Below, piece after piece: positions 18,055-58,619 of a stretch of DNA of 64,000 bases (its first letter is position 1; the number at the start of each line of letters is the position of its first letter). Made by a program: the position numbers and the translations under genes. This stretch comes from Dendrobates tinctorius. Lineage: Eukaryota. Below the pieces are notes generated by a model, which was not told where the DNA came from, searched no databases, and worked only from the letters and a program-made list of their open reading frames with translations. The stretch lies in the NCBI RefSeq assembly GCF_039654945.1, contig NW_027361924.1, positions 10,354,001 to 10,418,000 of the forward strand. Direction: 5' to 3'.

Positions 18055-18065
18055 TTCAATCAATC

Positions 18066-34223: not shown

Positions 34224-35798
34224 TTAGTTGATGATTCTGAGGCAAGAGTCTGGGAATAGATAAAAGGCGAGGTGGAGCGGCTCAGTGAAGGAGGCGGTGA
34301 AGGTGTGTAAGTGTCTGATGGGGTCACACACCTGAATGAAGGACAAACGCCCGGCCTCATAATCCAGAAAGATCCCCACAACCCGCACCTGAGGGTCAGA
34401 GAACAGCTGTTTAGGAGTATTGTTATGACGTGCCATAAAAAAGTAATTTGCACATAAAGCCCAAGACTTGTCATTATACCCAAGGAACGATTCGTTACCC
34501 ACAACCTTCCTCTCCAGACTTTGCCCGGCCACCCCTATCAGCCATCTCTCCGCCTGACTCACGTCCACCTCCCAGTAATGTCTCCCGGAGGAGAAGCTGC
34601 GGGAACTAAAGACTTGACGGGACTTGAACCTCTTGGGCCCATCGGGTCTGTTCTGTGATGTAGCGGAATAAGAAGCAGATCTGAGATCTCGTGATATAAT
34701 AATGTTATTATGGGCTGTGTCTACATCCAGTAATATGTCCGATTTCTCCATCACTGAGAACTGTCTCTTTATCCTCATAAACATGTCATCCGAAAAGCGT
34801 GCAAGTCCCTGGTGTAAGACCTGTGAGACTGACATGAGGTTCTGAGTCCCAATGTCCTTCACCTCACCAATGACATCGGGGGTCCGGTGACTAAACCCAT
34901 CACTCCTGTTCAGCTCCGTCAGGAAGGTGAGAGGGTCGTGGACCTTGCACAACTCCTCAGCCTGATGGATCTTAATTGCGAGCTCGTATCTTTCCTTCTC
35001 GAGTTCTTGGATTAAGTTGCTGATTGGCAACAAGACTTGATTTTCCTGCCTGGAGATCTCACAAAGGACTTTTCTCTCTAATACGCTCAGTTGATCCCTG
35101 AGGTCTTTGAACAAGTAGTGGACTCTCTTAGTGATCGCGGTGGACCTCATCTTCTCATCTTTCCTATGATCCTGTAGGTTATGGACTCTCTTCTCAATGT
35201 CCTCCTGCTCAGAGCTCAGTATCTCCATTATGTTCTCCAATTTTGCCTTCTCTTTCTGAAAGGCCACGTCCAATAGAGCGCAATCATGTCCCTTATGGTC
35301 TTCGACCACCCAGCAGGACACACAGATACAGGCGGCGTCTATAGGACAGTAGTATTTCAGCACCTCCTTGTGTGTGGAGCATTTTCTTTCCTCCGGGGTA
35401 ACAGTGGGGTCAACTAAGGTATGTTCTGGTGACTTACTGTGTCTGCTTAGGTGTTTTCCGCAAAAAGACGCCTCACACTGTAGACAAGTTCTTACTGCCG
35501 GTACAGGAGACTTTGTACAGTAAGTACAGAAGATCCTGGTCTCCTCCATATCAGGCTGAGTAGATGAGAAACGCTCCACTATGCTCCTCAGCTTCCGGTT
35601 CTTCTCCGGGGCCGGACGCTCCGGATATTCCGCTCTGCAGTCAGGACAGGAATACCCTCCAGCCGCCTCCTGGGCATCCAGCACACTCACAATACACGAG
35701 CGGCAGAAGTTGTGTCCACATCTCAGGGATACGGGATCTGTATAGAGGCTCAGGCAGATGGAGCAGTTCAGCTCGTCCCTCAGCTCCGCAGACGCCAT
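34224..35798 (-). CDS. Intronless TRIM E3 ligase A (RING, B-box1, B-box2, coiled coil, PRY/SPRY; TRIM25/TRIM39/finTRIM-like), 524 aa
   Basis: Single open frame with CSICL...CGHNFC...CPDC, CTYC...CLQC, CSTH...CICVSC and LDVDTAH...GRHYWEVDV...VGIFLDYEAG. Start placed at MASA (acaATGg) by comparison with the paralogue. Confidence 0.93.
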   Translation of the reverse strand: MASAELRDELNCSICLSLYTDPVSLRCGHNFCRSCIVSVLDAQEAAGGYSCPDCRAEYPERPAPEKNRKLRSIVERFSSTQPDMEETRIFCTYCTKSPVPAVRTCLQCEASFCGKHLSRHSKSPEHTLVDPTVTPEERKCSTHKEVLKYYCPIDAACICVSCWVVEDHKGHDCALLDVAFQKEKAKLENIMEILSSEQEDIEKRVHNLQDHRKDEKMRSTAITKRVHYLFKDLRDQLSVLERKVLCEISRQENQVLLPISNLIQELEKERYELAIKIHQAEELCKVHDPLTFLTELNRSDGFSHRTPDVIGEVKDIGTQNLMSVSQVLHQGLARFSDDMFMRIKRQFSVMEKSDILLDVDTAHNNIIISRDLRSASYSATSQNRPDGPKRFKSRQVFSSRSFSSGRHYWEVDVSQAERWLIGVAGQSLERKVVGNESFLGYNDKSWALCANYFFMARHNNTPKQLFSDPQVRVVGIFLDYEAGRLSFIQVCDPIRHLHTFTASFTEPLHLAFYLFPDSCLRIIN

Positions 35799-35815
35799 TG
35801 TAGTGGGAGAGAGCA

Positions 35816-35838
35816 GGAAATGAAAGTGGAAAAGTTCC
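35816..35838 (-). promoter_or_regulatory. IRF/ISRE-like element just upstream of the TRIM A start codon
   Basis: The + strand reads GGAAATGAAAGTGGAAAAGTTCC (tandem GAAA repeats). A TATA-like TTATAT lies just upstream on the - strand. Confidence 0.5.
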
Positions 35839-37687
35839 TTCATATAAGAAGGGTGGAGAGTTTCTCCAGAGAAATTAACCCCTAGAATAGACCAAAAATG
35901 TTGAAGGTTCTCCCATATAGATCAGAAAACCTATAACGATTCAGGAGTGTTAGCCAAAGTGAGTATAAAAAAATATTCTTTATTGAACAACGGACAAGAC
36001 TAATTTTTCTTAACAAAATATAAAAAGGGAAAATATATGTAAAAAAAAAAAAAAAAAGCATAAATCACACAGGAAACCTCCAAAAATAAATACAGCCAAA
36101 TAATAAGGTATAAGAACCTTACAAAAGGTATGGCTCAAGAACATGGTGCCCAAATAGCGAAAATGTAAAAAGCTAGGTAGCCCAGCGTAGGAATAGAACC
36201 AAAGAGCAAGGAACCAATGGGATAAACTGGGTTTTGTAGCATTCACAGGAGCAAAACTAAACCCAGCAAATGCTGAGAGGGGACCAAAGGTGGAATAACA
36301 TTACCAAAGGTCACCATTCATAAGAAAAGAGGCAATAGATGCCCAAATAGAAAGGTCAACGTGCCCTGTGTAAAAACTGATGACCGCTGTATAGCTGGAA
36401 AAGATTGTAGAAATAGACCAATGTTGGTCTAAGAAGAGAGAAGGTAAAAAAAAACCCTGTGTGGCAGCCAGCAAGGCCCCTCTGATGTGCGTTTCGCCAA
36501 CAGCTTCCTCTGGGGGTCTCATCGCTCTCAGCATTTTCTGTGCTTTGTCCTTTTCACAGAAGGCTTTTCACCCCTGGTCTGTACGTTTATCATACACTGC
36601 ACTCCTCCGGGGTCAGGCTCCTGTGAATGCTGCACACCTAATTTAACCCATTAGTCCCTTTCTCTTTGATGCTATTTCACTACTAAGCTATCTCTCTTTT
36701 TGCATTTTCATTATTTGTGAGGTTCTTCCACCTTATTATTTGCCATTAGGAATATTTCTGATCACTTTATCTGTTGTATTTGTCCCACGATGTGTTTAGG
36801 ATGATGGGATGGATCCAGACCTTTGGATATTGACTATTGATTGTATTTTCAATCATTAGGATTATTTTTTTCTGCCACTCCGGAATCCTTTATTTATCCC
36901 ATTGTGGCCTTCATTATTTTACTCCACATGGAAACGTGCGTCACCCATGAATGTACACACCTGATGTTCTGCGGAACCTCAGCTCAGCTGCTGCAGAACC
37001 TCATAGTGACCAGAAGGAGAAGAGACCTTCATATTAAATCAGTAGCAAAGTAGATTAAGGAATACTTCTCTCCCATTCCCCAATTCTTTCTCCCCTGGCC
37101 GAAGGAGTTGTCAGAGGAGCGGTGGCAGTGAGGGACATTTATCAGGCGCCGGACACTGCAGGGCGCAGACCCAAATCCGGGACTGTCCGCTGTATCCGGG
37201 ACTGTTGGGACTAGAGATGAGCGGATGGATTCACAGGACTCCGGTACGGATCAGTGAGACCGGACAGTTGGACGGGAGGCCGGGAATCTCTAACCTTCCA
37301 GCGTCCCCGGTGGCTTTTGCTCATCTGTGCGTCCGGCTCATCTCTAGTTGGGACTTGGGGATTATTTTTTGTTCCTTCATTCACAGTCGGAGCCGTCAGA
37401 ACTTTCTCATCTGTCTGGAGAGTCACTATTCAGCGTCTGTAAGGCCGTGTTCACACGGTGCAGAAATACTGTGTTTTTTTGTTTTTGCAGGATCCGCACC
37501 AAACTACACAGTAACCATCTTCTCTGATTATTGCAGCATTTTTACGCCTTTCCCCCTAATTTGATGATTTTTTTGGTGCAGATAACTTTTTTTATAGTAC
37601 AGAAAAGCTTTGATTCTGAACTTAATAAAATATCTGCAGTTTTTTACATGTTTTATTTTAGACTTCACATAGAAGACAAGAGAAATA

Positions 37688-40600
37688 AGTTCAGTGGCCT
37701 CTTTAGACCACAGGGGGCGCAGTTCAGCGGTGTCTTTAGACCACAGGGGGCGCAGTTCAGCGGTGTCTTTAGACCACAGGGGGCGCAGTTTAGTGGCGTC
37801 TTAAGACCACAGGGGGCGCAGTTCAGTGGTGTCTTAAGACCACAGGGGGCGCAGCTCAGTTGCGTCTTTAGACCACAGGGGGCGCAGTTCAGTGGCGTCA
37901 TTACACCACAGGGGGCGCAGTTCAGCGTTGTCTTTAGACCACAGGGGGCGCAGCTCAGTGGTGTCTTTAGACCACAGGGGGCGCAGTTCAGTGGTCTCTT
38001 TAGACCACAGGGGGCGCAGTTCAGTGGTGTCTTTAGACCACAGGGGGCGCAGTTCAGTGGCGTCTTAAGACCACAGGGGGCGCAGTTCAGTGGCATCTTT
38101 TTACCACAGGGGGCGCAGTTCAGTGGTCTCTTTAGACCACAGGGGACGCAGTTCAGTGGTCTCTTTAGACTACAGGGGGCGCAGTGCAGTGGCGTCTTTA
38201 TACCACAGGGGGCGCAGTTCAGTGGTCTCTTTAGACTACAGGGGGCGCAGTTCAGTGGCGTCTTTATACTACAGGGGGCGCAGTTCAGTGGTCTCTTTAG
38301 ACTACAGGGGACGAAGTTCAGTGGTCTCTTTAGACCACAGGGGGCGCAGTTCAGTGGCGTCTTTAGACCACAGGGGGCGCAGTTCAGTGGTCTCTTTAGA
38401 CCACAGGGGGCGCAGTTCAGTGGTCTCTTTAGACCACAGGGGGAGCAGTTCAGTGGCGTCTTAAGACCACAGGGGGCGCAGTTCAGTGGCGTCTTTATAC
38501 CACAGGGGGCGCAGTTCAGTGGTCTCTTTAGACCACAGGGGACGCAGTTCAGTGGTCTCTTTAGACCACAGGAGGCGCAGTTCAGTGGCGTCTTTAGACC
38601 ACAGGGGGTGCAGTTCAGTGGCATCTTTAGACCACAGGGGGCGCAGTTCAGTGCCGTCTTTAGACCACAGGGGGCGCAGTTCAGTGGCCTCTTTAGACCA
38701 CAGGAGGCGCAGTTCAGTGGCGTCTTTAGACCACAGGGGGCGCAGTTCAGTGGCGTCTTTAGACCACAGGGGGCGCAGTTCAGTGGCGTCTTTAGACCAC
38801 AGGGGGCGCAGTTCAGTGGCATCTTTAGACCACAGGGGGCGCAGTTCAGTGGCCTCTTTAGACCACAGGAGGCGCAGTTCAGTGGCGTCTTTAGACCACA
38901 GGGGGCGCAGTTCAGTGGCGTCTTTAGACCACAGGGGGCGCAGTTCAGTGGCCTCTTTAGACCACAGGAGGCGCAGTTCAGTGGCGTCTTTAGACCACAG
39001 GGGGGCGCATTTCAGTGGCGTCTTTAGACCACAGGGGGCGCAGTTCAGTGGCGTCTTTAGACCACAGGGGGCGCAGTTCAGTGGCGTCTTTAGACCACAG
39101 GGGGCGCAGTTCAGTGGCATCTTTAGACCACAGGGGGCGCAGTTCAGTGCCGTCTTTAGACCACAGGGGGCGCAGTTCAGTGGCCTCTTTAGATCACAGG
39201 AGGCGCAGTTCAGTGGCGTCTTTAGACCACAGGGGGCGCAGTTCAGTGGCGTCTTTAGACCACAGGGGGCGCAGTTCAGTGGCCTCTTTAGACCACAGGA
39301 GGCGCAGTTCAGTGGCGTCTTTAGACCACAGGGGGTGCAGTTCAGTGCCGTCATTAAACCACAGGGGGCGCAGTTCAGTGGCATCTTTAGACCACAGGGG
39401 GCGCAGTTCAGTGCCGTCTTTAGACCACAGGGGTCGCAGTTCAGTGGCCTCTTTAGATCACAGGAGGCGTAGTTCAGTGGCGTCTTTAGACCACAGGGGG
39501 CGCAGTTCAGTGGCGTCTTTAGACCACAGGGGGCGCAGTTCAGTGGCCTCTTTAGACCACAGGGGGCGCAGTTCAGTGGCGTCTTTAGACCACAGGGGGA
39601 GCAGTTCAGTGGCGTCTTTAGACCACAGGAGGCGCGGTTCAGTGGCGTTTTTAGACCACAGGGGGCGCGGTTCAGTGGCCTCTTTAGACCACAGGGGGCG
39701 CAGTTCAGTGGCGTCTTTAGACCACAGGGGGCGCAGTTCAGTGGCCACTTTAAACCACAGGGGGCGCAGTATAGTGGCGTCTTTAGACCACAGGGGGCAC
39801 AGTTCAGTGGCCTCTTTAGACCACAGGGGGCGCAGTTCAGTGGCGTCTTTAGACCACAGGGGGCGCAGTTCAGTGGCCACTTTAAACCACAGGGGGCGCA
39901 GTTTAGTATCGTCTTTAGACCACAGGGGGCGCCTTTCAGTGGCGTCTTTAGACCACAGGGGGCGCAGTTCAGTGGTGTCATTACACCACAGGGGGCGCAG
40001 TTCAGCATTGTCTTTAGACCACAGGGGCGCAGTTCAGTGGCGTCTTTAGACCACAGGGGGCGCAGTTCAGTGGCATCTTTAGATCACAGGAGGTGCAGTT
40101 CAGTGGCGTCTTTAGACCACAGGGGGCGCAGTTCAGTGGCCTCTTTAGATCACAGTGGGCGCAGTTCAGTGACCTCTTTAGACCACAGGGGGCGCAGTTC
40201 AGTGGCGTCTTTAGACCACAGGAGGCGCTGTTCAGTGACCTCTTTAGACCACAGGGGGCGCAGTTCAGTGGCCTCTTTAGATCACAGGGGGCGCAGTTCA
40301 GTGGCGTCTTTAGACCACAGGGGGCGCAGTTCAGTGACCTCTTTGGACTACAGGGGGTGCAGTTCAGTGGCGTCTTTAGACCACAGGGGGCGCAGTTCTG
40401 TGGCGTCTTTAGACCACAGGGGGCGCAGTTCAGTGCCGTCTTTAGACCACAGGGGGCGCAGTTCAGTGACCTCTTTAGACCACAGGGGGCTCAGTTCAGT
40501 GGCCTCTTTGGACTACAGGGGGTGCAGTTCAGTGGCGTCTTTAGACCACAGGGGGCACAGTTCAGTGGCGTCTTTAGACCACAGGGGGCGCAGTTCTGTG

Positions 40601-40690
40601 GCGTCTTTAGACCACAGGGGGCGCAGTTCTGTGGCATCTTTAGACCACAGGGGGCGCAGTTCAGTGGCGTCTTTAGACCACAGGGGGCAC
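37688..40690. repeat. 33-bp minisatellite (about 90 copies)
   Basis: Unit tttagaccacagggggcgcagttcagtggcgtc. Confidence 0.97.
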
Positions 40691-43094
40691 AATTCTGGAA
40701 TGGAGAACCGAGGACTCCTCAGTGCAAATGTTTTACTTGAGGCCAAATTCCTTAGCAGATTTAGCTCTGAATGGTCAACGACATAAGTGGTCAAAGTGGG
40801 GGTAATTTTGCAATGGATGCTCAACCTGAGACCTTAATTTGGCAGGTGTGATATGATAAACTCATGGTCAGGTATGTACATATATAAAATGCCCCCAAAC
40901 TTCCTAATCCCCGCTGCATTAATAGGGGTTAATCTGTGATGACTGCCAAATACAAAGGCATGGTTTTTGAAAATAAATTTTGCCACATAGATATTTTCCT
41001 GGGTCACTGATTCGTCAAGCAAATAGACTTCTCCCCGCGATGAAAGGACCATTAGAACATTAGTGACTGCAGTTACTAACACTCCCTTCATCTCCGTCAT
41101 GGTGGTTTCATCTATTTCCAGGGTTTGTTACATGGAGATCTTTGACACTTTTGGCACATTTCTCCATGGACTACCCCTTAAACAGGTCAAAAGACACCGG
41201 CTGATACACTACACCAATCAGGTACCCAATTATCAGACATGGGCAGTTATCCCTCCCAGAAAGGTCCCAAGTTCACTTGTCCAATTTTTTCCCGTACAGA
41301 GTCAGATATGGAGCCCCTAATCTTCACCATCCTCTAGGACGATGATGAGCGTACGTCTCTGAACATTCAGGGAACGGACGTCGGGGCCCTCGCTGATCCC
41401 ATGAATGGCAGTCAGTAGGTCACTGAAATGAAAGTCAGTTTTACATAAGGTCATAAAGCATTTTCAGAGCTCGGATCTCATTGATCGTCTCCAGAAACTA
41501 AACAACAATATCACCGTGATGACGGTATTTTATTAGAAGTCAAGTACACAAGAAAGTAACAGTCCACTAATACAAGAGAAATACTGATCCAGTAAAATCA
41601 GGATCCCACCCATTGTAATACACACAAAATATAAAGGCAATAATGCAAATTTTAATCCATCATCAGACATATTCGGACTTACTGGACATAACATTGTTAA
41701 ATACTCTGTTTTTTATTGTGTTGGTTTTTACACTTATGGCAAAATATATATATATTTTTAATATTCAAATTTGTGTTTTAACAATTTCTTGAATAGTCCA
41801 GGTTAGGACTAAAGAATTTTACATGAAGAATGTTGTCAGTTTAAGAAGATCATTCACCAAACTTTTTCCCCCTACACCCCACAAGCCCATCCATTCTGGC
41901 CCACCAGCCCCAAGGGGGCACACCAAGGAGGCCAAGGTCTTAAAGGCTATTTAGCTGTAGTCATGATGTCACCTCGGAAGCCTACAACAAAGATGTGGAG
42001 AAGCAGCGGAGAAGCAGGAATGTGGTAGGGGATGAGCGATACGGACTATTATATTTACAAAAACAACGCCTGTGAATTTAAAAACAATAAAATTTAGCTG
42101 ATGACGAGACCTGAGTGGTCTCTAAATCTGCAATATGTTTCCATCTTTTCGGTTAGCCATTAAATGCCTCTCTCTGCATATATCGGGCTGCGCTCGGATG
42201 ACATCTGAGTGCAGTCCGATGTTTCCCACCCACTTATAGACTTGTATGGGTGCGTGTGCGCCGAGTCTCGCTGCCAATCACAGCATGCTGCAGAATCGGC
42301 ATGAGAAAACATTGCAGTTCTGCACTACCCCAAAGTATAACAGTGGTCCGAGTGCAATCCGATACAATATCAGATAGCACTCGGCCGTGTTATATGCCTG
42401 TGTGACCGCGGCCTACGAGGAGCCTTATACCTCCATTTATGATGAAGGAATCTATATCAATCTTATAGTGAGTTTTAATGAAACAACAATTCTGAAGACA
42501 CTTCCCTGGAACCTGATAAGAAAATAATGGATGAAATCCTTTTATGTAAGGAGGTGGCGGAGACCCCCATCTGCCTCCTCTCTCCTTCCCTACAGTATGT
42601 TAATGTATTGCTGTGATAACCAATGTAAAGTGCATGTAGAGTAGGGATAGCAAAGAGTTAATTTAGTGGCTGGCTCAGCAGGCTTCCCTGTCTGCAGAGC
42701 AAAGCCTGGGCAGGCCTGCCTGTGGCAGGACGTGCTCCCCACTGGGAGCATACCGTACCCCTGGAGGGGACAGGGCTGCCAGTGGACTATCAGGCAGCAG
42801 GCACAAGGACTGTGTGCAGGCCCGGATTGGCAATATAACCAACCGGGCATTTTCCCGCTGGGCCGCTGTCGTGTGGGCCGCGGGCGGCAGCTCCCATCAT
42901 CTGGCCGCTTGCCAGCTGCTGCGGCCACTGTTGCTCCTGCCGCCGGCCCTCTGCAGCATGGCGGTGATAGTTTCAAGTTCCTCCCGCACTGCAGGGAGAT
43001 AAGCCGCGCACCCCATCCTCGCCTTAGCATGATGAGACCCCCTCCCCCCGCAGCCACTCAGTGTCGCACTCGCTTTGCCTGCTCTCTCTATTCG

Positions 43095-43217
43095 CAGGAC
43101 CTGTGATGAGGTCACAGGAGGGGAGGAGTCAGGGGTCACATGATCAGGAGCCTTTGTCCAGACCCCTGACATGTCACCCCTGACTCCGCCCCTCCTGTGA
43201 CCTCATCACAGGTCCTG
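43095..43217. repeat. Inverted repeat (about 53-bp arms), probably DNA-transposon internal sequence
   Basis: caggacctgtgatgaggtcacaggagggg... pairs with ...cccctcctgtgacctcatcacaggtcctg. Confidence 0.8.
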
Positions 43218-43319
43218 TGCGCTCAGCCTTGCCTCTTGGTGTCTGCTGCTTTGCTGTTGTCATGGTGCTGGTTGAGGTAAGTATGTGTGGGGTCAGGATT
43301 TACAGTGTGGATGTAGCAG

Positions 43320-44630
43320 AGCTGTGTGTGTATGAGATGTACGGAGCGGAGCCGTGTGTGTACAAGGTGTACGGAGAGAAGCCGGATGTGTATGAGGTGT
43401 ACGGAGCGGAGCCGCGTGTGTACGAGGTGTACGGAGCGGAGCCGCGTGTACGAGGTGTACGGAGCGGAGCCGCGTGTATGAGATGTACGGAGCGGAGCCG
43501 TGTGTGTACGAGGTGTACGGAGAGAAGCCGGATGTGTATGAGGTGTACGGAGCGGAGCCGTGTGTGTACGAGGTGTACGGAGCGGGGCCGTGTGTGTACG
43601 AGGTGTACGGAGCGGAGCCGTGTGTGTACGAGGTGTACGGAGCGGAGACGCGTGAGTACGAGGTGTACGGAGCGGAGCCGCGTGTATGAGATGTACGGAG
43701 CGGAGCCGTGTGTACGAGGTGTACGGAGAGAAGCCGGATGTGTATGAGGTGTACGGAGCGGAGCCGTGTGTGTACGAGGTGTACGGAGAGAAGCCGGATG
43801 TGTATGAGGTGTACGGAGCGGAGCCGTGTGTGTACGAGGTGTACGGAGAGAAGCCGGATGTGTATGAGGTGTACGGAGCGGAGCCGTGTGTGTACGAGGT
43901 GTACGGAGTGGAGACGCGTGAGTACGAGGTGTACGGAGCGGAGCCAGGTGTACGGAGCGGAGCCGCATGTATGAGATGTACGGAGCGGAGCCATGTGTGT
44001 ACGAGGTGTATGGAGAGAAGCCGGATGTGTATGAGGTGTACGGAGCGGAGCCGTGTGTGTACGAGGTGTACGGAGCGGAGACGCGTGAGTACGAGGTGTA
44101 CGGAGCGGAGCCGCGTGTACGAGGTGCACGGAGCGGAGCCGCGTGTATGAGGTGTACGGAGCGGAGCCGTGTGTGTACGAGGTGTACGGAGCGGAGCCGC
44201 GTGTACGAGGTGTACGGAGCGGAGCCGCGTGTACGAGGTGTACGGAGCGGAGCCGCGTGTACGAGGTGTACGGAGCGGAGCCGCGTGTACGAGGTGTACG
44301 GAGAGGAGCCGCGCGTGTACGAGGTGGACGGAGCGGAGCCGCGCGTGTACGAGGTGGACGGAGCGGAGCCGTGTGTGTACGAGGTGTACGGAGCGGAGCC
44401 GCATGTACGAGGTGTACGGAGCGGAGCCGCGTGTATGAGGTGTACGGAGAGGAGCCACGCGTGTACGGAGCGGAGCCGCGCGTGTACGAGGTGGACGGAG
44501 CGGAGCCGCGCGTGGACGGAGCGGAGCCGCGCGTGTACGAGGTGGATGGAGCGGAGCCGCGCGTGTACGAGGTGTACGGAGTGGAGCCATATGTGTACGG
44601 GATGTACGGAGTGGAGCCAAGTGTGTACAA
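43320..44630. repeat. 28-30-bp CpG-rich minisatellite
   Basis: Unit gtgtacgaggtgtacggagcggagcc(gt)n. Confidence 0.95.
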
Positions 44631-45054
44631 AGCATACAAAGTAGGCTTTTCCCACGGACACAGGAGTACACGGCGGAGCCCCGAGGAGCATTTTAAAACA
44701 CACACATGATGTTCCACCTGAAGTGATGTGCTGGAAGCTGACCGGAAATGAGATAATTTCTTGAGGAGATTGTGACGGAACTAGGAATGCTTCAGATCCA
44801 TCACTGTGTCCTCCTCCGACAGCGCAGACAGCAGGATCACCTTGGAATCGGGGATGCCGGCCATGTAAGCGGATCATGATAGGTCCTGCACCGGGAGGCT
44901 CAGGTGGGCACTACAATGGGAGCCGGGCTGCTATAGTATCTTTATAGAATCTTTCTTTATTTCTTTCTCTCTTTTTCTTTCTTTCTCTGTTCTTTCTCAT
45001 TCTCTGTTCTGTCTTTCCCTCATTTTCTTTCTCTCTCTGTTCTTTCTCTCTCTG

Positions 45055-45185
45055 NNNNNNNNNNNNNNNNNNNNNNNNNNNNNNNNNNNNNNNNNNNNNN
45101 NNNNNNNNNNNNNNNNNNNNNNNNNNNNNNNNNNNNNNNNNNNNNNNNNNNNNNNNNNNNNNNNNNNNNNNNNNNNNNNNNNNNN
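45055..45185. other. Assembly gap (131 N) within a CT-rich low-complexity tract (about 44950-45348)
   Basis: Run of N. Confidence 0.99.
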
Positions 45186-47587: not shown

Positions 47588-50405
47588 GAACGGAGGTTAC
47601 TACATCGACATGATACCAGAACGGAGCTTACTACATCGACATGATACCAGAACGGAGCTTACTACATGGACATGATACCAGAAAGGAGCTTACTACATCG
47701 ACATGATACCAGAACGGAGCTTACTACATGGACATGATACCAGAAAGGAGCTTACTACATTGATACCAGAACGGAGCTTACTACATCGACATGATACCAG
47801 AACGGAGCTTACTACATGGACATGATACCAGAAAGGAGCTTACTACATCGACATGATACCAGAACGGAGCTTACTACATTGACATGATACCAGAACGGAG
47901 CTTACTACATGGACATGATACCAGAAAGGAGCTTACTACATCGACATGATACCAGAACGGAGCTTACTACATCGACATGATACCAGAACGGAGCTTACTA
48001 CATCGACATGATACCAGAACGGAGGTTACTACATCGACATGATACCAGAACGGAGCTTACTACATCGACATGATACCAGAACGGAGCTTACTACATCGAC
48101 ATGATACCAGAACGGAGCTTACTACATCGACATGATACCAGAACGGAGCTTACTACATGGACATGATACCAGAAAGGAGCTTACTACATCGACATGATAC
48201 CAGAACGGAGCTTACTACATCGGCATGATACCAGAACGGAGCTTACTACATCGACATGATACCAGAACGGAGCTTACTACATCGACATGATACCAGAACG
48301 GAGCTTACTACATCGACATGATACCAGAAAGGAGCTTACTACATCGACATGATACCAGAACGGAGCTTACTACATCGACATGATACCAGAACGGAGCTTA
48401 CTACATCGACATGATACCAGAACGGAGGTTACTACATCGACATGATACCAGAACGGAGGTTACTACATCGACATGATACCAGAACGGAGCTTACTACATC
48501 GACATGATACCAGAACGGAGCTTACTACATCGACATGATACCAGAACGGAGCTTACTACATCGACATGATACCAGAACGGAGCTTACTACATCGACATGA
48601 TACCAGAACGGAGCTTACTACATGGACATGATACCAGAAAGGAGCTTACTACATCGACATGATACCAGAACGGAGCTTACTACATCGGCATGATACCAGA
48701 ACGGAGCTTACTACATCGACATGATACCAGAACGGAGCTTACTACATCGACATGATACCAGAACGGAGCTTACTACATCGACATGATACCAGAAAGGAGC
48801 TTACTACATCGACATGATACCAGAACGGAGCTTACTACATCGACATGATACCAGAACGGAGCTTACTACATCGACATGATACCAGAACGGAGCTTACTAC
48901 ATCGACATGATACCAGAACGGAGCTTACTACATCGACATGATACCAGAACGGAGCTTACTACATCGACATGATACCAGAACGGAGCTTACTACATCGACA
49001 TGATACCAGAACGGAGCTTTCTACATCGACATGATACCAGAACGGAGCTTACTACATCGACATGATACCAGAACGGAGCTTACTACATCGACATGATACC
49101 AGAACGGAGCTTACTACATCGACATGATACCAGAACGGAGCTTACTACATCGACATGATACCAGAACGGAGCTTACTACATCGACATGATACCAGAACGG
49201 AGCTTACTACATCGACATGATACCAGAACGGAGCTTACTACATCGACATGATACCAGAAAGGAGCTTACTACATCGACATGATACCAGAACGGAGCTTAC
49301 TACATCGACATGATACCAGAACGGAGCTTACTACATCGACATGATACCAGAACGGAGCTTACTACATCGACATGATACCAGAACGGAGCTTTCTACATCG
49401 ACATGATACCAGAACGGAGCTTACTACATCGACATGATACCAGAACGGAGCTTACTACATCGACATGATACCAGAACGGAGCTTTCTACATCGACATGAT
49501 ACCAGAACGGAGCTTACTACATCGACATGATACCAGAATGGAGCTTACTACATCGACATGATACCAGAACGGAGCTTACTACATCGACATGATACCAGAA
49601 CGGAGCTTACTACATCGACATGATACCAGAACGGAGCTTTCTACATCGACATGATACCAGAACGGAGCTTACTACATCGACATGATACCAGAACGGAGCT
49701 TACTACATCGACATGATACCAGAACGGAGCTTACTACATCGACATGATACCAGAACGGAGCTTACTACATCGACATGATACCAGAACGGAGCTTACTACA
49801 TCGACATGATACCAGAACGGAGCTTACTACATCGACATGATACCAGAACGGAGCTTACTACATCGACATGATACCAGAACGGAGCTTACTACATCGACAT
49901 GATACCAGAACGGAGCTTACTACATCGACATGATACCAGAACGGAGCTTACTACATCGACATGATACCAGAACGGAGCTTACTACATCGACATGATACCA
50001 GAACGGAGGTTACTACATCAACATGATACCAGAACGGAGCTTACTACATCGACATGATACCAGAACGGAGCTTACTACATCGACATGATACCAGAACGGA
50101 GCTTACTACATAGATACGATACTTACTACTTACACGCAGAATGTAACTATGGCTTCTCACCTGTAAATTTGATGCTGAAATAAAAATGTACATATCACAC
50201 TTTCTGAACATAACTGTGGCTTCTTCCCTGTGTGAATTCCCTGATGTACATTTGATTTCTTTGGATTTGATTTGACAGAAACAAATTGTGAGCGAATAAT
50301 TCATTGATTTTGAATGGAGCTTACTACATAGACATGATACCAGAACGGAGCTTACTACATCGACATGATACCAGAACGGAGCTTACTACATCGACATGAT
50401 ACCAG
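47588..50405. repeat. 31-bp highly homogeneous minisatellite (about 80 copies to 50110, plus 3 more at 50312-50405)
   Basis: Unit gacatgataccagaacggagcttactacatc. Confidence 0.97.
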
Positions 50406-50815
50406 AGGGGGCCACTACACAGCCCAGGCAGAGAGGGACCCACTACAAGGCCCTGGCAGAGGGGGGCCACTACATATGGCCCGGTAGAGGGGGGCCACTA
50501 CATGACCCAAGCAGAGGGGGGAACACTACACAGCCCAAGCAGAGGGGGGCACACTACAAGGCCCTGGCAGAGGGGGGCCCACTACATGGCCCGGTGGAGG
50601 GGGGCCCACTACATATGGCCCGGTGGAGGGGGCCCACTACACAGACCAGGCAGAGAGCGGCCCACTACACAGACCAGGCAGAGGGGGGCCCACCACACAG
50701 ACCAGGCAGAGGGGGGCCCACCACATAGACCATGCAGAGGGGGGCCCATCACACAGACCAGGCAGAGGGGGGCCCACCACACAGACCATGCAGAGGGGGG
50801 CCCATTACAAGGCCC
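50400..50815. repeat. ~28-bp G-rich degenerate repeat
   Basis: Unit ccactacacagaccaggcagagggggg. Confidence 0.85.
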
Positions 50816-51129
50816 AGCGCTAGATGCCATTCCTGTACATTGGTGGCAGTGGCACTGCACTTTTACTTACATTAATGCAGAAGCAGCAGCAGGAATGATC
50901 TCTCTAAGGTAATGAGCTTGTCAGTATATAGGAGAGGGGAAAACGTGCCTCCAGATGCGGTGTGGACACCTCAATGCCTAAAGCACCATCGTCCTTTGTG
51001 ATAGATGCCTATAAGCTCTACACAATCTATATACCACACGTAAGTGAAGGTCACATTGACCGAAACGTCTTTTTTCGTGTACCACAATAAACCGCCTTAC
51101 AAATACCTTTAAGTTGAGTGCTAGGTTCA

Positions 51130-51545
51130 TATCTGGACACTACGCTGACAGACACAGCAAACCTTCTTGTCACAGCTCGCGTTGATGTGCCATCCTGGAT
51201 GAGCTGCACTACCTGAGCAACTTGTGTGGGTTGTAGAGTCCGTCTCATGCTACCACGAGTCTGAAAGCACAACCAACATTCAAAAGTGACCACAACATCA
51301 TCCAGAAAGCATTGGTACTGAGATGTGGTCTGTGGTCCCCACCTGCAGAACCACTCCTTTATTGAGGGTGTCTTGATAATTACCAATAATTTCCATCTGT
51401 TGTCTATTCCATTTGCACAACAGCATGTGAAATTGATTGTCAATCAGTGTTGCTTCCTAAGTGGACGGTTTGATTTAACAGAAGTTTGATTTACTTGGAG
51501 TTATATTCTGTTGTTTAAGTGTTCCCTTTATTTTTTTGAGCAATG
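51130..51545 (-). mobile_element. Tc1-like transposon 5' fragment (left end and paired-like HTH start)
   Basis: On the - strand, cattgctcaaaaaaaataaagggaacac is followed by [39 protein letters not shown]. Confidence 0.8.
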
Positions 51546-52104
51546 TTTATTGATGGCTGTTTTGTTTCAGTTAACGTGTGCAGCATTTGGCAGATGCCCT
51601 AATGAAAAATAAGCACACCCTCATTATAGATAAAGTTATATGTCTGATGGTTTTTGTGTCCGTCATGTGACAAATACAGCTTGCACAAAACTGATGGTGG
51701 TTCTGGTGATGTATTCTGGTTCTGGTGATGTACTAATGTAGTGATGGTGATTTTGGTGCTGTATTCTTGTAGTGATGATCGGTGAATCGCGCATGCGCCG
51801 TTTTGAGCAGCTTCCCACAGGTGCGCACTGAAGCTGTGTGTACTACAAAGCTTCACTGACTATGCAAACAGAGCCACTTGCCACGGCTCAAGAGTGGGGA
51901 GCTGCTCGTCACGGCGCAAGCGCAGCTCCCAAATCACCACTGCGCAAGCGCAACTCCATGATACACTGCGCAAGTGCGGCTCCATGACACACTGCGCAAG
52001 TGCGGCTCCATGATACAGTGCGCAAGCGCGGGATTTTCAGATCAAATTTGAGTGACGTCAGCACAACCCTGAGAACATCATTCAGTTTGCATGATGGAAG
52101 GTTC

Positions 52105-52740
52105 ACCTGTCACCATTGCTGGTCAGGAAGTGGAGCAGGTGGAGAAGTACAAATAATTGGGGGTCCAGTTGGACAGTAAACTGGACTGGAGATGCCACAC
52201 GGAGAGAATTTACAAGAAAGGGATTAAAAATCTGTACTTTCTAGGGAAACTAAGATTGTTTAATGTGTAGAGCAAAATGTTAGAAATATTCTACCAGTCT
52301 GTAGTGGCAAGTGCCATCTTTTTCGCAATCATATGCTGGGGAAGTAGTGTGTGGGTGTCTGATGCTAAATAAGCTTTATCAAGAAGGCAAGCTCGGCTGT
52401 TGGCCGCCATTTTGCCACTTTTGAAGAGATAGTGGAGGAAAGAATTCTAAAGAAGTGTTTGGCGACAATGAGCAATAACGCACACCCGTTATATGAGCTG
52501 TTCATGAGGCAGAGGAGCACCTTTAGTAACGGTCTAATCCTACTAAGGTTTAAGAAGGAAAGATACAGGAGATCGTTCATGCCGACTGCTCTGGGAATGT
52601 ACACCAACTACCTAAGTGTGAAATTCTCCAAGTGACTGGTGGATTATCGGCGTTCTAATGGTAAATCGTACTGACCAGTCATAAATAGAAATGTATGAGA
52701 TTATACCTGCAAAATTCTACTGTTATGTTGTAATTCACGT
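52105..52740 (+). mobile_element. Rex1/Babar LINE 3' fragment (RT thumb and C-terminus)
   Basis: VEQVEKYK*LGVQLDSKLDW...LYFLGKLRLFNV*SKMLEIFYQSVVASAIFFAIICWG...HPLYELF...ERYRRSFMPTA. Confidence 0.75.
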
Positions 52741-54060
52741 TTATGTTCTGATGATGTGATACACTTTATTGATCCCGAGGGAAATTACATTATCTTATCA
52801 TATCAGAACATGAATACGTCACAGAACCACAATTAGTACATGAATGCATCACTAGTTTCACCATCAGTACATGAATACATCTACAGACCCACCATCAGCA
52901 CTTGACTAAGGCACCAAAACGCCATCAGTAAATTAATTTGTCACCAGAATCTCCATCATTCCATGAATACGTCACAAGAGACACCATAAGTACATGAATA
53001 CATGACCAGAACCAAGAGTACTTGAATACAAGAACCAAGCTTAGCACAAGAATCAATTTTAATATCAAGTCAGTCCCATAAACAATTGTATCACATTAAC
53101 CCACAACTCCCCAGTATGTCCTTAATAATGGTACGGAGATACTGGGAGTTGTTATTAACAGCCATTATCTGGAGTTGTCTCTTTTTATCTCCCTCTTGTC
53201 TAGATGCCATGATGACTTTTCACAGTCACAGCTATTCTCTGCCGATCTCCTTCTTCTCCATTTTTTTGCAGCACATCCCGACACAGTGCCCTTCAAAAAT
53301 AAGAGTGTTAATAAAATGTCCTCTGCATAAAAACATCTGTTCATATTATGACCTAAATAAGCCTCCTATGGTATATGACCTCCACACTGTCTACCATTAT
53401 CACCTGTAACCGCCACACCGACTGCCCTTATGTGCCATGGCTGTCCCCTCCCTAATTATCCGTTACACTTTCTCCACACTGTGCCTCCACCATGCTAACC
53501 CCTCTCCATATTGTGCCTCCATTTCACACTGTCCTCTCTCCGTATCTATTATGTCACATTTTCACACTAAGCCCTGATTCTGCCCTCTTCAAACTGTAAC
53601 CACTCCTCACACTGTCCTCTACACCGCATGATGGTAACCACAGCCGCCCATATGGTATGACTTCCACGATAACCTCCCAATGTATAGTATAACATCCAGT
53701 ACAGCCTCCAATATATAGTATAACATCCAGCACAGCCTCCAATATATAGTATAATATCCAGCACAGAACCCCCAAAATAGTATGATGTCCAAAACAGCCC
53801 CATGTATACTGTGATGAGCCCCACTGCATCCCATATAGTATTATGGCCCACAAACAACACCCCAAACAGTATGATATTCACCACAGCCCCTTATCCAGTA
53901 AGGCCAGCACAGCACCCAGTATAATGACCTCCACAGCCCCACATACAGTAGGGTCACCACAGCTCTTCATATACTTTGCTGTCTCCCCGCACAGCCCCTC
54001 ATTTCATCGCCTGAGCGCACAGCCCCTAATTTTATACTTCCTTGCACAACCCCTAATTTT

Positions 54061-55203
54061 TTTTGAATCAGATCTTTTTTATTAAACATTCAGGAATCAA
54101 TACAGAAAGAATATGACATCTTATATAGCTAGTAAAAATTACATTGAGAGCAGATATTATTTAAAGGGTAAAACTCTTCCTGTGTAAGAATAAATAAAAA
54201 GAAGAAATCTCAAAACACAGATATTTGCATAAAATTGAGCCTATAAACAACATGGCTCCACAAATAAACAAAAATCAAAATTATACATCAGTGCCTCATT
54301 TCAGCGGGAAAACCATCCCCGCCAGCCGCGCCACTCCGCATCATATTTCGCCCCCCCCGCATATCAGGTCCAATCCACCCCAGCCCCCTCCCACAGCGCC
54401 ACTCAAAATCTACTTCGCCACAAAGGGCACTAGACTTTATTTTCACCCCCCAAGCATCCCCTCATCGCAAGCACAACAGCAACTGGTCCAACATCGCATC
54501 CCGTACCAGTGCGCCCGAGGGGAGACCCGGTGACTCCATCCATGGCTGCCAAATTTTGTAAAACTTTCTTAATGCATTTCTTTTTAAATAAGCCCCCCTT
54601 TCCAATCTGATGACATTATTTAGTTTATTTTTAAGCTCTGACAATGTTGGTGGCATAGGATCCAACCAATGATATGCAAGTATCTTTCTTGCCTGATACA
54701 GGGTGCGTGCTATTCCCAGGGCCACTGCAGAGTCCGGGTCAACCCCCTCCTCCCACAAATTCAACAAACATAGACGAGGTGACGGTCGTATTGTGATATG
54801 GTATACTTGGGCTATGAGTCCCAGGGTCTGCCTCCAGAAATCCCCAATGTGCCCGCACTCCCACATAACATGCATCAAGTGGGCATCATCCTGCCCACAC
54901 CTAACACATTGTGTATTGGGCCTAAGTCCCATTTTAAATAATAAGCTGGGTGTTTTATATACCCTGTGAATGAGATATATTTGCGAAAGCCGCTGGCACT
55001 CAGAAACCGCCATTTTAGGGACCTGTTCTAGAATATCGGACCACTGGTCCTCCGTCAGGGGGCCAACGTCCCGTTCCCACTTATTCTTAGCAGCAGTCAG
55101 TGGATATGTCTCCAGATGGGCAGGCAATAATCTTTTATATAATTCAGAGATAAGTCCCCTAGAAGACTCAGATGTAAGCAGCATATGTAGTGTTTGATTA
55201 TGA
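54061..55203 (-). mobile_element. 5'-truncated L1 with poly(A) tail and perfect 16-bp TSD
   Basis: ORF2 C-terminus CVRCGQDDAHLMHVMWEC...KFYKIWQPW, then AATAAA and an A tail. TSD cacaacccctaatttt at 54045-54060 and 55204-55219. Confidence 0.9.
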
Positions 55204-56004
55204 CACAACCCCTAATTTTATTTGCCATTAGCACAGCCTCTCATTTTATTCCCCCGCTGCGCAGCCCCTCATTTTGTTCCCCAATACACAGTAATATAAG
55301 AATTACAAAAAATAGAGCAAAGAGCTTGTACTCACCTAATCCAGGATCCCGTCCACCATCTCCTCTTCTACGCAGTTCAGCAGTGGGCGCTGGATGGCGT
55401 GAGGGCATGACTTGATCACGCCATCCAGTGTCCCCTGGATGCGCCTTTTCCAACAAGTGCAGGCAAAAAATGGCCTGCGTCTTCCTGGAAATCACGGCGC
55501 ATGCAGGAACGATTACAGCTCCTCTGCTCCTGTTCCGGCCGGCGCTAACATCAATTATATTTGTGTCTGAGAGACACAAATACATTTGAGTGCAGGGAGG
55601 GAGCTACTGAGTATTTTGTGCCCGCACCCTAGCAGTCTCTGTGCTGAATGTCTGCGGCCGGAGGAAGGCGATGGGTGGCCGCAGGCTTTCAGCGATTTTT
55701 TTTCAAAGTGCTCTCCCCTAGGGTAGGCAGGAGGTAGCGCCGTAGGCGGGTGCCTACCCTGTCTATTTCTTGTCCCAGCGCTGGTGCTGATTAATGGGTA
55801 CAACTTAGTCTCGACCTCCATCAGGACAGGGTGCCCCGCAAAAGTTTTGATAAATTACTGCGATACTGGAACTTTGTCTGTGATTTGAATGTTTCTCGAT
55901 GGGAAGAAAGAAATGTTATGAGCTCCCAGTTTATCCTTCTAGTGCAATGTATGTGTGATGTTATTGACCTCTGGGCAATTGACATCTGGGCAATAAAAAT
56001 GGAA

Positions 56005-56724
56005 AAAGCATATATAGAATGGGAGGAATAGGGCTAAGCCACAGCACATGTGAAAAAGACTTGGGTATACTAATAGATCACAGACTGAATATGAGTCAAC
56101 AGTGTGATGCAGCAGCAAAAAAGGCAAATGCAATTCTAGGATGTATTAACAGAAGCATACAGTCTAGATCACGTGAAGTCATTATTTCCCTCTACTCCTC
56201 TTTGGTCAGACCTCATCTGGAATATTGTGTCCAGTTTTGGGCACCACATTTTAAAAAAGACATCAACAAACTGGAGCAAGTTCAGAAAAGAGTGACCAGA
56301 ATGGTGACCGGTCTGCAAACCCTGTCTTATGAGGAAAGGTTGCAGGATTTGGGAATGTTTAGTTTGCAAAAGAGAAGACTGAGAGGAGACTTAATAGCTG
56401 TCTACAAATATCTAAAGGGCTGTCACATTGTAGAAGGATCAACTTTATTCTCATTTGCACAAGGAAAGACTAGAAGCAATGGGATGAAACTGAATGGGAG
56501 GAGACACAGATTAGATATTAGAAAAAACTTTTTGACAGTTAGAGTGATCAATGAGTGGAACAGGCTGCCACGAGAAGTGGTGAGTTCTCCTTCAATGGAA
56601 GTCTTCAAACAGAGGCTGGACAGACATCTGACTGGGATGATTTAGCGAATCCTGCTTTGAGCAGGGGGTTGGACCAGATGGCCCAGGAGGTCCCTTCCAA
56701 CTCTACGATTCTATGATTCTATGA
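56005..56724 (+). mobile_element. 5'-truncated CR1 LINE
   Basis: Open 208-aa ORF2 C-terminus (EKDLG, LVRPHLEYCVQFWAP, RRLRGDLI, WNRLP) and an (attctatg)n tail. Confidence 0.93.
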
Positions 56725-57044
56725 CCCAGCTAGCGGTGCCACCTCCCCCCCAATATAAATTACAATATTCTAGGTCACCAAGAGGCTCCATGATTATATA
56801 AATGTACGAGGCTGCTGGCTGAGCTCATCCACACCGGCCATAGACCTGCTTGGTGACTTGTAATAGTCTCATAATTTACTCAGATGCCTTATTAGTTTTA
56901 CTTCAAGCAGCAGCTCTGCATTGTGAGGTTCTCTGTATAGTGTGACTGCCACTTCCAGAAGTGTAAGGGTTAATGTGACTTTAGAATCTCTGCCCTTTCC
57001 CCTTCCTAAATGAAGGAACTTGGTTCCTGCTCTCTCCCACTACA

Positions 57045-58619
57045 ATGGCGTCTGCGGAGCTGAGGGACGAGCTGAACTGCTCCATCTGCCTGAGCCTCTA
57101 TACAGATCCCGTATCCCTGAGATGTGGACACAACTTCTGCCGCTCGTGTATTGTGAGTGTGCTGGATGCCCAGGAGGCGGCTGGAGGGTATTCCTGTCCT
57201 GACTGCAGAGCAGAATATCCGGAGCGTCCGGCCCTGGAGAAGAACCGAAAGCTGGAGAACATAGTGGAGCGTTTCTCATCTACTCAGCCTGGTATGGAGG
57301 AGACCAGGATCTTCTGTACTTACTGTACAAAGTCTCCTGTACCGGCAGTGAGGACATGTCTGCAGTGTGAGACCTCCATGTGTGAGGAACATCTCACAGC
57401 CCACAATAAGTCAGTGAATCACAATCTCATTGAACCTACAGTGTCATTTATGGATCGAAAATGCTCCGCACACAATGAGAGCCTGAAATATTACTGTCCT
57501 GTAGACGCCGCCTGTATCTGTGTGTCCTGCTGGGTGGCCGGAGCCCATAAGGCACATGAAGTTGAGCCACTGGATGTCGCCTCTGAGAAGGCAAAGAAAA
57601 AACTGAGGCCTGTTATGGAGAAACTAAAGTACAAGAGAGAAGAAGCTCAAAAAAGAGTCCAGAATCTGAAGGATCACGGGACAAAACAGGGAAACAAATC
57701 AGCCGGACTCAGTGACAGAGTCGTTCTCCTGTTTACTGATCTCAGGAAGAAGCTGGATGATCTTGAAAAGAGAATCCAGGGAGAGATTTCCAGACAGAAG
57801 GATCAGGTCTTACATTCAGTCTCTGACCTGGTAGAACAGGTGGAGCTTCAAGTGGACAAACTGACCAAGGACATGAATCATCTTGAAGGACTATGTAATC
57901 TCACTGATCCACTGACCTTTCTACAAGACGTAAAGGCCGGTGACATCAGTGACGGGAGCTGTGAGGTCATCGGTGATGTAAGAGATGCTCCGTGTGTGGA
58001 TGAAGGTCTAGTCTCACAGATATTACACAGAGGGCTGGGGAACTTTGCTGATGACCTGATTGATATGAAGATAAAGAGACAGTTCTCAGTGATGGAGAAA
58101 TCAGACATATTACTGGATGTAGACACAGCCCATAATAACATTATTATATCTCAGGATCTCAGATCTGCTTCTTATTCCGCTGCATCACAGAACAGACCCG
58201 ATGGGCCCAAGAGGTTCAGATCCCAACAGGTGTTAAGTTCCCGCAGCTTCTCCTCCGGGAGACATTACTGGGAGGTGGACGTGAGTCAGGCCGAAAGATG
58301 GAATATTGGAGTGGCCGGGGAAAGTCTAAAGAGGAAGGTGAGCGAGAAGAAATCTTATATTGGCTTCAACGAGAAATCCTGGACTGTAATTACTGCGCAA
58401 AATCTCTTTGCAAGTCATAACAATATTCATAAAAAGCTAGCGTCAGATTCTCCTGTGCGGGTTGTGGGGATCTATCTGAACTATGAGGCCGGGCGTCTGT
58501 CCTGCTATCAGGTGTGTGACCCCATCAGACACTTACACACCTTCACCGCCTCCTTCTCCGAGCCGCTCTATGCCGCTTTCTGTCTATATAGTAATTGCGT
58601 GATCAGAATCATAAAATAA
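57045..58619 (+). CDS. Intronless TRIM E3 ligase B (RING, B-box1, B-box2, coiled coil, PRY/SPRY), 524 aa; paralogue of TRIM A
   Basis: Single open frame with the same domain motifs as TRIM A. Confidence 0.93.
   Translation: MASAELRDELNCSICLSLYTDPVSLRCGHNFCRSCIVSVLDAQEAAGGYSCPDCRAEYPERPALEKNRKLENIVERFSSTQPGMEETRIFCTYCTKSPVPAVRTCLQCETSMCEEHLTAHNKSVNHNLIEPTVSFMDRKCSAHNESLKYYCPVDAACICVSCWVAGAHKAHEVEPLDVASEKAKKKLRPVMEKLKYKREEAQKRVQNLKDHGTKQGNKSAGLSDRVVLLFTDLRKKLDDLEKRIQGEISRQKDQVLHSVSDLVEQVELQVDKLTKDMNHLEGLCNLTDPLTFLQDVKAGDISDGSCEVIGDVRDAPCVDEGLVSQILHRGLGNFADDLIDMKIKRQFSVMEKSDILLDVDTAHNNIIISQDLRSASYSAASQNRPDGPKRFRSQQVLSSRSFSSGRHYWEVDVSQAERWNIGVAGESLKRKVSEKKSYIGFNEKSWTVITAQNLFASHNNIHKKLASDSPVRVVGIYLNYEAGRLSCYQVCDPIRHLHTFTASFSEPLYAAFCLYSNCVIRIIK

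Follow-up and report, generated by a model that had tools for sequence, protein, structure and literature searches.

Multigene families comparable to the genes reported here have been described in fish, squamates, and mammals. The teleost finTRIMs (van der Aa et al. 2009; PMC2657112) are TRIM25/TRIM16-related proteins with RING, B-box, coiled-coil, and B30.2 parts that arose through lineage-specific duplications; many of the medaka copies are intronless, and variation and selection were located in the B30.2 loops. Recombination and positive selection were both reported for these genes, with GARD breakpoints in the RBB as well as the B30.2 part, and no finTRIM orthologues could be found in Xenopus or other tetrapods (PMC2657112). 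In the zebrafish NLR-B30.2 family (Howe et al. 2016; PMC4852459), conversion differs by domain, as revealed by contrasting synonymous divergence: it makes NACHT uniform inside a group and carries B30.2 variants from one group to another, and the escape of gene parts from homogenisation has been discussed (PMC4852459). For the squamate harbiTRIM genes, a 2025 preprint described TRIM arrays in which duplication goes together with gene conversion, along with GARD and RDP4 signals of recombination or conversion and breakpoints inside PRY-SPRY (PMC12262214). In the mammalian TRIM6/34/5/22 cluster, variable loops set target recognition (Sawyer et al. 2007; PMC2151084), and limited recombination with mainly diversifying selection was noted (PMC12262214). 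The present study concerns two TRIM genes, gene A and gene B, in a 64,000-nucleotide (nt) stretch of the genome of the frog Dendrobates tinctorius (contig NW_027361924.1, positions 10,354,001–10,418,000; hereafter the window). Near-identical blocks alternate with deeply diverged ones along the pair, and A and B are very probably old paralogues in which short stretches were overwritten by copying between gene copies, that is, by conversion or short-tract recombination.

A tblastn search revealed exactly two TRIM genes in the window. Gene A (34224–35798, minus strand) and gene B (57045–58619, plus strand) are each an uninterrupted coding sequence (CDS), stop included, for a protein of 524 amino acids (aa), which begins with MASAELRD in gene A; an in-frame upstream ATG would give a gene A product of 539 aa. 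The genes are divergently oriented, and 21,246 nt separate the two start codons, in agreement with the first-pass annotation, made from the letters of the window alone, which had reported two 524-aa TRIM genes lying head-to-head about 21 kb apart. That annotation also called both genes intronless, which is correct for the coding sequences; upstream of them, an acceptor-like TTCTAG/G is found about 85 nt before the ATG, and NCBI holds a spliced isoform of gene A ('TRIM7-like isoform X2', XP_073414727, same protein cluster).

Overall, A and B were 66% identical at the aa level, and this identity was distributed in blocks. In the following, A coordinates are on the minus strand and B coordinates on the plus strand, and the alignment columns behind the synonymous fractions, which were taken over conserved codons, are offset from the listed residue ranges by at most 2 positions. 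Constant block 1 (A 35493–35819; B 57024–57350) consisted of 21 nt of leader and codons 1–102, covering the RING and the start of B-box1; nt identity over residues 1–102 was 97%, with a synonymous difference in 2% of the conserved codons. The variable B-box1 tail (codons 103–140; A 35379–35492; B 57351–57464) was 61% identical, with 58% synonymous difference. Constant block 2, the B-box2 (codons 141–170; A 35289–35378; B 57465–57554), had 88% nt identity and 5% synonymous difference (1 of 21 conserved codons) and contained a 36-nt identical run. The variable coiled coil and linker (codons 171–340; A 34779–35288; B 57555–58064) had approximately 57% nt identity in a gapped alignment, 56% synonymous difference, 41% aa identity, and saturated synonymous divergence (dS). 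Constant block 3, made up of the PRY and the first SPRY strands (codons 341–429; A 34512–34778; B 58065–58331), was 91% identical with 12% synonymous difference, followed by the variable SPRY loops (codons 430–469; A 34392–34511; B 58332–58451) with 61% and 56%. The SPRY core, constant block 4 (codons 470–504; A 34287–34391; B 58452–58556), was again 91% identical, with 3% synonymous difference (1 of 30 conserved codons) and a 49-nt identical run, and the variable C-terminal tail (codons 505–524; A 34227–34286; B 58557–58616) showed values of 60% and 33%. The block-like identity claimed in the first-pass annotation could thus be reproduced in its details: 4 aa differences within residues 1–109, a 188-nt identical tract composed of 21 leader nt and the first 167 coding nt, 5 differences over 77 aa in the PRY block IKRQF...AERW, and a stretch, QVCDPIRHLHTFTASF, identical in both genes. 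The 167-nt run was the longest identical coding run (p ≤ 2e-4).

Homology between the two leaders (A 35799–35884, minus strand; B 56964–57044) starts at the acceptor-like site and is of lower identity, with a 10-nt indel, while no alignable homology between A and B could be found past the stop codon. The 10 nt inserted in A relative to B are TTCCACTTTC, situated within ...GGAACTTTTCCACTTTCATTTCC... (35799–35860). This insertion carries GAAA repeats of the interferon regulatory factor type on the other strand, and it does not match the canonical spacing of an interferon-stimulated response element.

Protein-level constraint was removed from the comparison by restricting it to those degenerate codons, 338 in number, at which A and B have the same amino acid. 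The heterogeneity of synonymous differences among blocks (chi2 108.6) was reached in none of 20,000 permutations (p < 5e-5), nor did any permutation reach the longest observed stretch of such codons lacking a synonymous change, which was 54 codons (0 of 20,000). Sliding Nei-Gojobori dS was 0 at codons 1–50, approximately 0.05–0.1 up to codon 100, and 0.1–0.35 in the PRY, and it was saturated at codons 100–140, 170–330, and 430–470; a sliding-window comparison had been proposed as a check in the first-pass annotation, and the uniform dS along the gene that it had named as a refuting observation is rejected. At least seven switches between the similar and the diverged state could be counted in 1.57 kb, the similar tracts having nt divergences of 0%, 5%, and 9–12%. 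The GC content at third codon positions was somewhat higher in the constant blocks, which is compatible with GC-biased conversion but not conclusive.

Trees of the individual blocks were constructed from protein alignments of 66 full-length relatives from 11 hyloid frog species, among them gene C, a third TRIM that starts approximately 0.75 kb past the window end. The coiled-coil tree consisted of three deep, starred lineages (support above the star threshold), each common to several frog families. In this tree, gene A fell into a starred lineage with the D. tinctorius protein XP_073414729 and genes of Ranitomeya imitator, R. variabilis, Phyllobates terribilis, Anomaloglossus, and Leptodactylus, where the A-type orthologues were single genes per species and appeared in species order; the A-type SPRY sequences of these orthologues also formed a starred clade. 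Genes B and C belonged to separate sub-clades of a second lineage, and the third lineage contained further genes of D. tinctorius, Ranitomeya, Phyllobates, and Bufo. Since the A-type coiled-coil clade includes both Leptodactylus and dendrobatoids, this tree shows that the A and B lineages split before the divergence of dendrobatoids and leptodactylids.

The RING tree (residues 1–100) was arranged differently. All eight Anomaloglossus genes formed one clade (support 95, starred), 12 of the 13 Bufo genes clustered (support 87, not reaching the star threshold), and the 34 dendrobatoid genes all stood together (support 93), each of these groups mixing coiled-coil types. The tree required 19 changes of the coiled-coil label as against 6 changes of the taxon label, the latter being the minimum possible, and forcing the A-type clade on it was rejected (delta log-likelihood 63.7; approximately unbiased (AU) test, p 0.0099). 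In its RING block, gene A differed by 4 aa from B, by 4 from a third-lineage Ranitomeya gene, and by 16 from its own Anomaloglossus orthologue. The block trees suggested in the first-pass annotation are therefore incongruent, and because the RING groups by taxon whereas the coiled coil and SPRY group by paralogue lineage, the RING block is, on the evidence of these trees, subject to concerted evolution that recurs in at least three frog groups (Anomaloglossus, Bufo, and dendrobatoids). Among all blocks, the RING is the only one homogenised family-wide. The PRY/SPRY trees mostly followed the coiled-coil lineage (3 label changes), and homogenisation of the PRY and SPRY core looks older or more local than that of the RING. 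The B-box region was a patchwork with 11 label changes, in which two discrete B-box1 tail types assort independently of the coiled-coil type across the family; C, XP_073414732, and others combine an A-like B-box1 tail (77–95% identity to A) with a B-type coiled coil.

Exchange could also be observed at a larger scale. Residues 1–340 of XP_073414729 were 98–100% identical to A, and residues 341–523 were 97–100% identical to gene C; placing its SPRY with the A lineage was rejected by the AU test (p 0.03). XP_073414730, located elsewhere on the same contig, is a 98% copy of B with 9 aa differences, and XP_073414729 lies 9.9 kb downstream of it, matching the position of C downstream of B. These identities, together with the placement downstream of B's copy, indicate that a recent event joined the RING, B-boxes, and coiled coil of A to the PRY/SPRY of C. 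The B/C pair thus appears to exist twice, through duplication or because a second haplotype is retained, with A sequence having replaced part of one partner. The first-pass annotation had expected specificity modules to diverge; deep divergence was confirmed, but the chimera indicates that variable modules are also swapped as cassettes, by which new coiled-coil/SPRY combinations are made. Contigs of other individuals carry the variant of the copy and not the letters of B; instead of occupying separate loci, B and XP_073414730 may represent alleles or haplotypes.

The order of events that would account for these observations can be outlined as follows. Two paralogue lineages split before dendrobatoids and leptodactylids diverged, so that their coiled coils and SPRY loops differ deeply. 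Non-reciprocal copying, which we infer to be interlocus gene conversion or short-tract recombination, would then have overwritten some stretches: the end of the 5' leader and the RING block very recently, and the B-box2, PRY, and SPRY core less recently. The outcome would be near-identical segments alternating with saturated ones. The number of state switches and the different divergences of the tracts argue for repeated short tracts and not one crossover. In what seems the most economical reading, conserved stretches would stay similar enough to keep recombining, and stretches diverged below the identity needed for homologous exchange would escape, bar occasional large swaps such as the A::C chimera. 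The exchange would take place among clustered paralogues and probably between scaffolds too, given that the RING is also common to third-lineage genes of D. tinctorius located on a 7.1 Mb contig.

A different cause, possible but unlikely, would be an adaptive constant/variable receptor design, in which selection keeps the RING, B-box2, and PRY as a uniform scaffold and favours diversification of the coiled coil, for the choice of partner, and of the SPRY loops, for the choice of target, as well as the shuffling of cassettes. Conversion would then be a means and more than a by-product, which is in essence the reading of the first-pass annotation. Variability was evaluated as entropy per block in 26 paralogues from dendrobatoids that belong to the A or B lineage, where the low/high profile of the A–B pair also held: mean entropy was 0.23 bits in the RING, 0.34 in the SPRY core, and 0.45 in the PRY, against 1.01 in the coiled coil, 1.06 in the tail, and 1.25, the highest value, in SPRY residues 431–470. 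In an AlphaFold2 (AF2) model of A residues 330–524 (predicted local distance difference test score 84.7), which matched the TRIM25 PRYSPRY with a TM-score of 0.82 and a root-mean-square deviation of 1.5 Å (Foldseek), this most variable segment corresponded to a long loop (426–444), a hairpin (445–458), and the next loop. The concentration of variation in the SPRY loop and hairpin (431–466) and the tail would suit such a design, as would the discrete and deep coiled-coil types and the new combination in the A::C chimera, with modules that assort combinatorially. However, dN/dS between A and B is uninformative in the variable blocks because dS is saturated there, the closest pair, B and XP_073414730, shows no change in the SPRY loops, and neutral escape of diverged segments from conversion gives the same pattern. 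The PRY stretch that we take, from an alignment by eye, to be the equivalent of the hypervariable V1 loop of TRIM5 is conserved in these genes.

An extended form of the same idea, to which we give somewhat less credence, holds that the family is a finTRIM-like germline repertoire evolved independently in frogs, with discrete coiled-coil types, which would govern dimer pairing, and PRY/SPRY cassettes, which would govern binding, recombined by conversion, and with selection maintaining a uniform RING effector module throughout the family and between scaffolds. If true, the frog genes would constitute a combinatorial constant/variable innate receptor system upheld by selection and not a by-product of conversion.

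It is improbable that a few discrete unequal crossovers or duplications made the chimeras once, followed by birth-and-death without recurrent conversion. The A::C chimera, with its single clean breakpoint near residue 340, could have been produced in this way, and the B/C pair and its counterpart formed by XP_073414730 and the chimera resemble a segmental duplication. Nevertheless, the switches between A and B are too many within 1.57 kb, and their tracts of too clearly different ages, for this explanation, and RING homogeneity recurs independently in Anomaloglossus, Bufo, and Dendrobatinae, for which single events are insufficient.

The possibility that the identical blocks are artefacts of assembly or polishing, for example through reads of one paralogue correcting another, was weighed against contigs of sequencing runs aligned to 2,201 letters of gene B. 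These were short Logan contigs, broken at repeated words. Mis-polishing is conceivable for a 188-nt identical tract in multi-paralogue sequence, and the best-matching DNA runs probably stem from the individual that was assembled. Three further samples, belonging to two other studies, gave contigs that covered the CDS of B and bridged the junction from coiled coil to PRY (57825–58133, 57514–58038, and 57514–58291), and contigs of other individuals and studies showed 0–1 differences to B's RING block. Contigs matching the constant blocks, those at constant block 1 coming from three other frog samples, left into unlike sequence at the edges 57326–57351 and 58556–58564, as would be expected if these blocks are common to other paralogues. 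Contig depth was 148–181 inside the RING block and 12–20 in unique parts, a hint only, as depth does not equal copy number. Two of the three samples that bridge the junction carried all six substitutions of XP_073414730 within residues 210–487 (D210Y, V227A, D271V, K342R, I343M, and C487F; 57514–58537). Constant-block variants in other samples may stem from other paralogues, and no dN/dS was taken from them. No splice joints were seen in the run contigs over the 2,201 letters. The run data argue against an assembly artefact, as do the near-uniform RING across deep lineages in five other, independently assembled frog genomes and the blocks of 88–95% identity, which are not a product of polishing; an artefact is accordingly a very remote explanation.

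Least credible is purifying selection alone, or locally raised mutation in the variable blocks, acting without exchange: the constant blocks do coincide with parts under structural constraint (the zinc ligands of the RING, the core of the B-box2, and the core strands of the SPRY), but selection alone is rejected by the synonymous-only block test (synonymous differences at conserved codons of 2–12% in constant blocks versus 56–58% in variable ones) and opposed by the 21 identical leader nt and by a RING tree that is positively incongruent, not merely unresolved, and local hypermutation is rejected because the coiled coil of A is not unusually diverged from that of its orthologues (91% aa identity between A and its Ranitomeya orthologue).

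Several points weigh against short-tract copying between old paralogues as set out above. The family-level tests are protein trees of short blocks (100 columns for the RING, quick search). Homogenisation of the PRY and SPRY core was seen at the DNA level in the A–B pair only, the family trees of these parts tracking lineage, and hence the idea of the first-pass annotation that conversion keeps the constant modules uniform stands for the RING across the family and for the PRY/SPRY core in this pair alone. The data do not distinguish conversion from unequal crossing-over that took place repeatedly. All runs over the identical 188-nt tract consist of short contigs, not long reads; the RNA label given to some runs is a guess, and the runs so labelled carry the XP_073414730 variant, not that of B.

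The single assembly gap (N, 45055–45185, no strand) is intergenic and at least 9 kb from either gene, and the mosaic as a gap artefact could be rejected on this ground. The gap lies within one CT-rich simple repeat with the same motif and strand on both sides, so the divergent orientation of A and B is probably right, and the 21 kb distance between them, with the gap inside it, is an estimate only.

Compared with the finTRIMs, the frog genes likewise form a duplicated TRIM25-related family with variation in the B30.2 loops and intronless copies. The two differ in that the whole frog family has a single coding exon and a RING homogenised across deep coiled-coil lineages, and in that positive selection is published for finTRIMs whereas the frog genes are known from divergence and entropy. 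The frog family looks like an independent expansion, because finTRIM orthologues were not found in Xenopus or other tetrapods (PMC2657112). Domain-specific conversion, probable in the frog genes, is a feature of the zebrafish NLR-B30.2 immune multigene family as well, and in both it is evidenced by a synonymous contrast between domains; the zebrafish genes encode NACHT-LRR-B30.2 proteins with domains on separate exons, whereas the frog switches occur within one exon and it is the RING that is homogenised. The harbiTRIMs resemble the frog genes as tandem, fast-evolving PRY-SPRY TRIMs of a non-mammalian tetrapod but belong to another TRIM clade and host, and are antiviral against flavivirus capsid, a contrast to frog genes known by sequence. 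The TRIM6/34/5/22 cluster is likewise a group of clustered PRY/SPRY TRIM paralogues; its V1 PRY loop is hypervariable, whereas the presumed equivalent is conserved between A and B.

Among proteins of solved structure, human TRIM25 is the closest relative both in sequence (4cfg, best PDB sequence match, E 2e-53, with RING, both B-boxes, coiled coil, and PRY/SPRY) and in fold (PRYSPRY structures 6flm and 4b8e). Identity in the PRY/SPRY is approximately 30–33%, and TRIM25 is a single-copy gene with multiple exons, whereas the frog genes occur in many copies, each with one coding exon. The frog genes are likened to TRIM25 as relatives, not as orthologues.

The first-pass annotation had considered the pair its strongest candidate for an undescribed system. 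Domain-wise conversion with a variable B30.2 is already published (PMC4852459, PMC2657112, PMC12262214), and the mosaic is an amphibian instance of a known evolutionary mode, not a new mechanism. A literature search for amphibian TRIM genes or this frog family returned no description, and TRIM25-like genes whose coding sequence lies in one exon form a large, apparently undescribed expansion across frogs. The locus illustrates cleanly how concerted evolution can be limited to one module, the RING, in paralogue lineages that predate the frog families, accompanied by a fresh cassette swap between neighbouring genes, and it is useful for research on amphibian antiviral and anti-chytrid immunity.

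Both proteins have the same TRIM25-like architecture of RING, B-box2, and PRY-SPRY with a probable B-box1 and coiled coil, corresponding to class IV TRIM proteins. In the Pfam search, zf-C3HC4_4, zf-RING_UBOX, and zf-C3HC4 were all above cut-off at residues 12–54 of both proteins, zf-B_box scored 33.8 and 38.3 bits (cut-off 24.1) at residues 136–176 for the B-box2, and the PRY and SPRY profiles were above their cut-offs in A and B. The B-box1 (ANCHR-like_BBOX, residues 90–124) and the coiled coil (TRIM_CC, residues 199–298) were below the curated cut-offs, and the region containing both aligned without a break to the same parts of human TRIM25. A and B are members of a large, frog-specific, clustered family of putative E3 ubiquitin ligases that resemble TRIM25 and are each encoded by one coding exon. 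Judged by family membership, the proteins are probably cytosolic RING ligases that form coiled-coil dimers and bind targets via the PRY/SPRY surface, plausibly with a role in innate immunity.

The product of gene A exactly matched the D. tinctorius NCBI protein 'TRIM7-like' isoform X1 on an 11.6 Mb contig (GCA_039654945.1). Gene B has no annotation of its own and appears solely as the opening 523 residues of XP_073414854, a 1074-aa read-through model spanning 9,275 nt, the second half of which is gene C. No GT donor was found at the end of gene B (ATC ATA AAA TAA), which makes the fusion of B to C doubtful, and it is probably a gene-model error. Besides this mis-modelling of B, NCBI names in the family (TRIM7-, TRIM11-, TRIM25-, TRIM39-, and TRIM62-like) are arbitrary, which gives the present comparison some value for annotation.

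Much of the interval between A and B is occupied by four minisatellites, at 37688–40695 (33 nt × 91 copies), 43315–44628 (30 nt × 46), 47588–50122 (31 nt × 82, 97% matches), and 50403–50817 (28 nt × 15), which give rise to long spurious open reading frames (ORFs). Several further ORFs in this interval had no family matches. Another tandem array, with a period of approximately 29 nt, was located at 30721–32305 by blastn self-matches spaced at successive multiples of 29 nt (29, 58, 87, etc.). ORFs at 17385–19762 showed a weak zinc-knuckle match and a sub-threshold reverse-transcriptase match. An intact single ORF at 26816–28696 (plus strand), 5.5 kb past the 3' end of gene A, encodes a 626-aa leucine-rich-repeat protein with an LRRNT and approximately ten LRR_8 units (E 1e-95).

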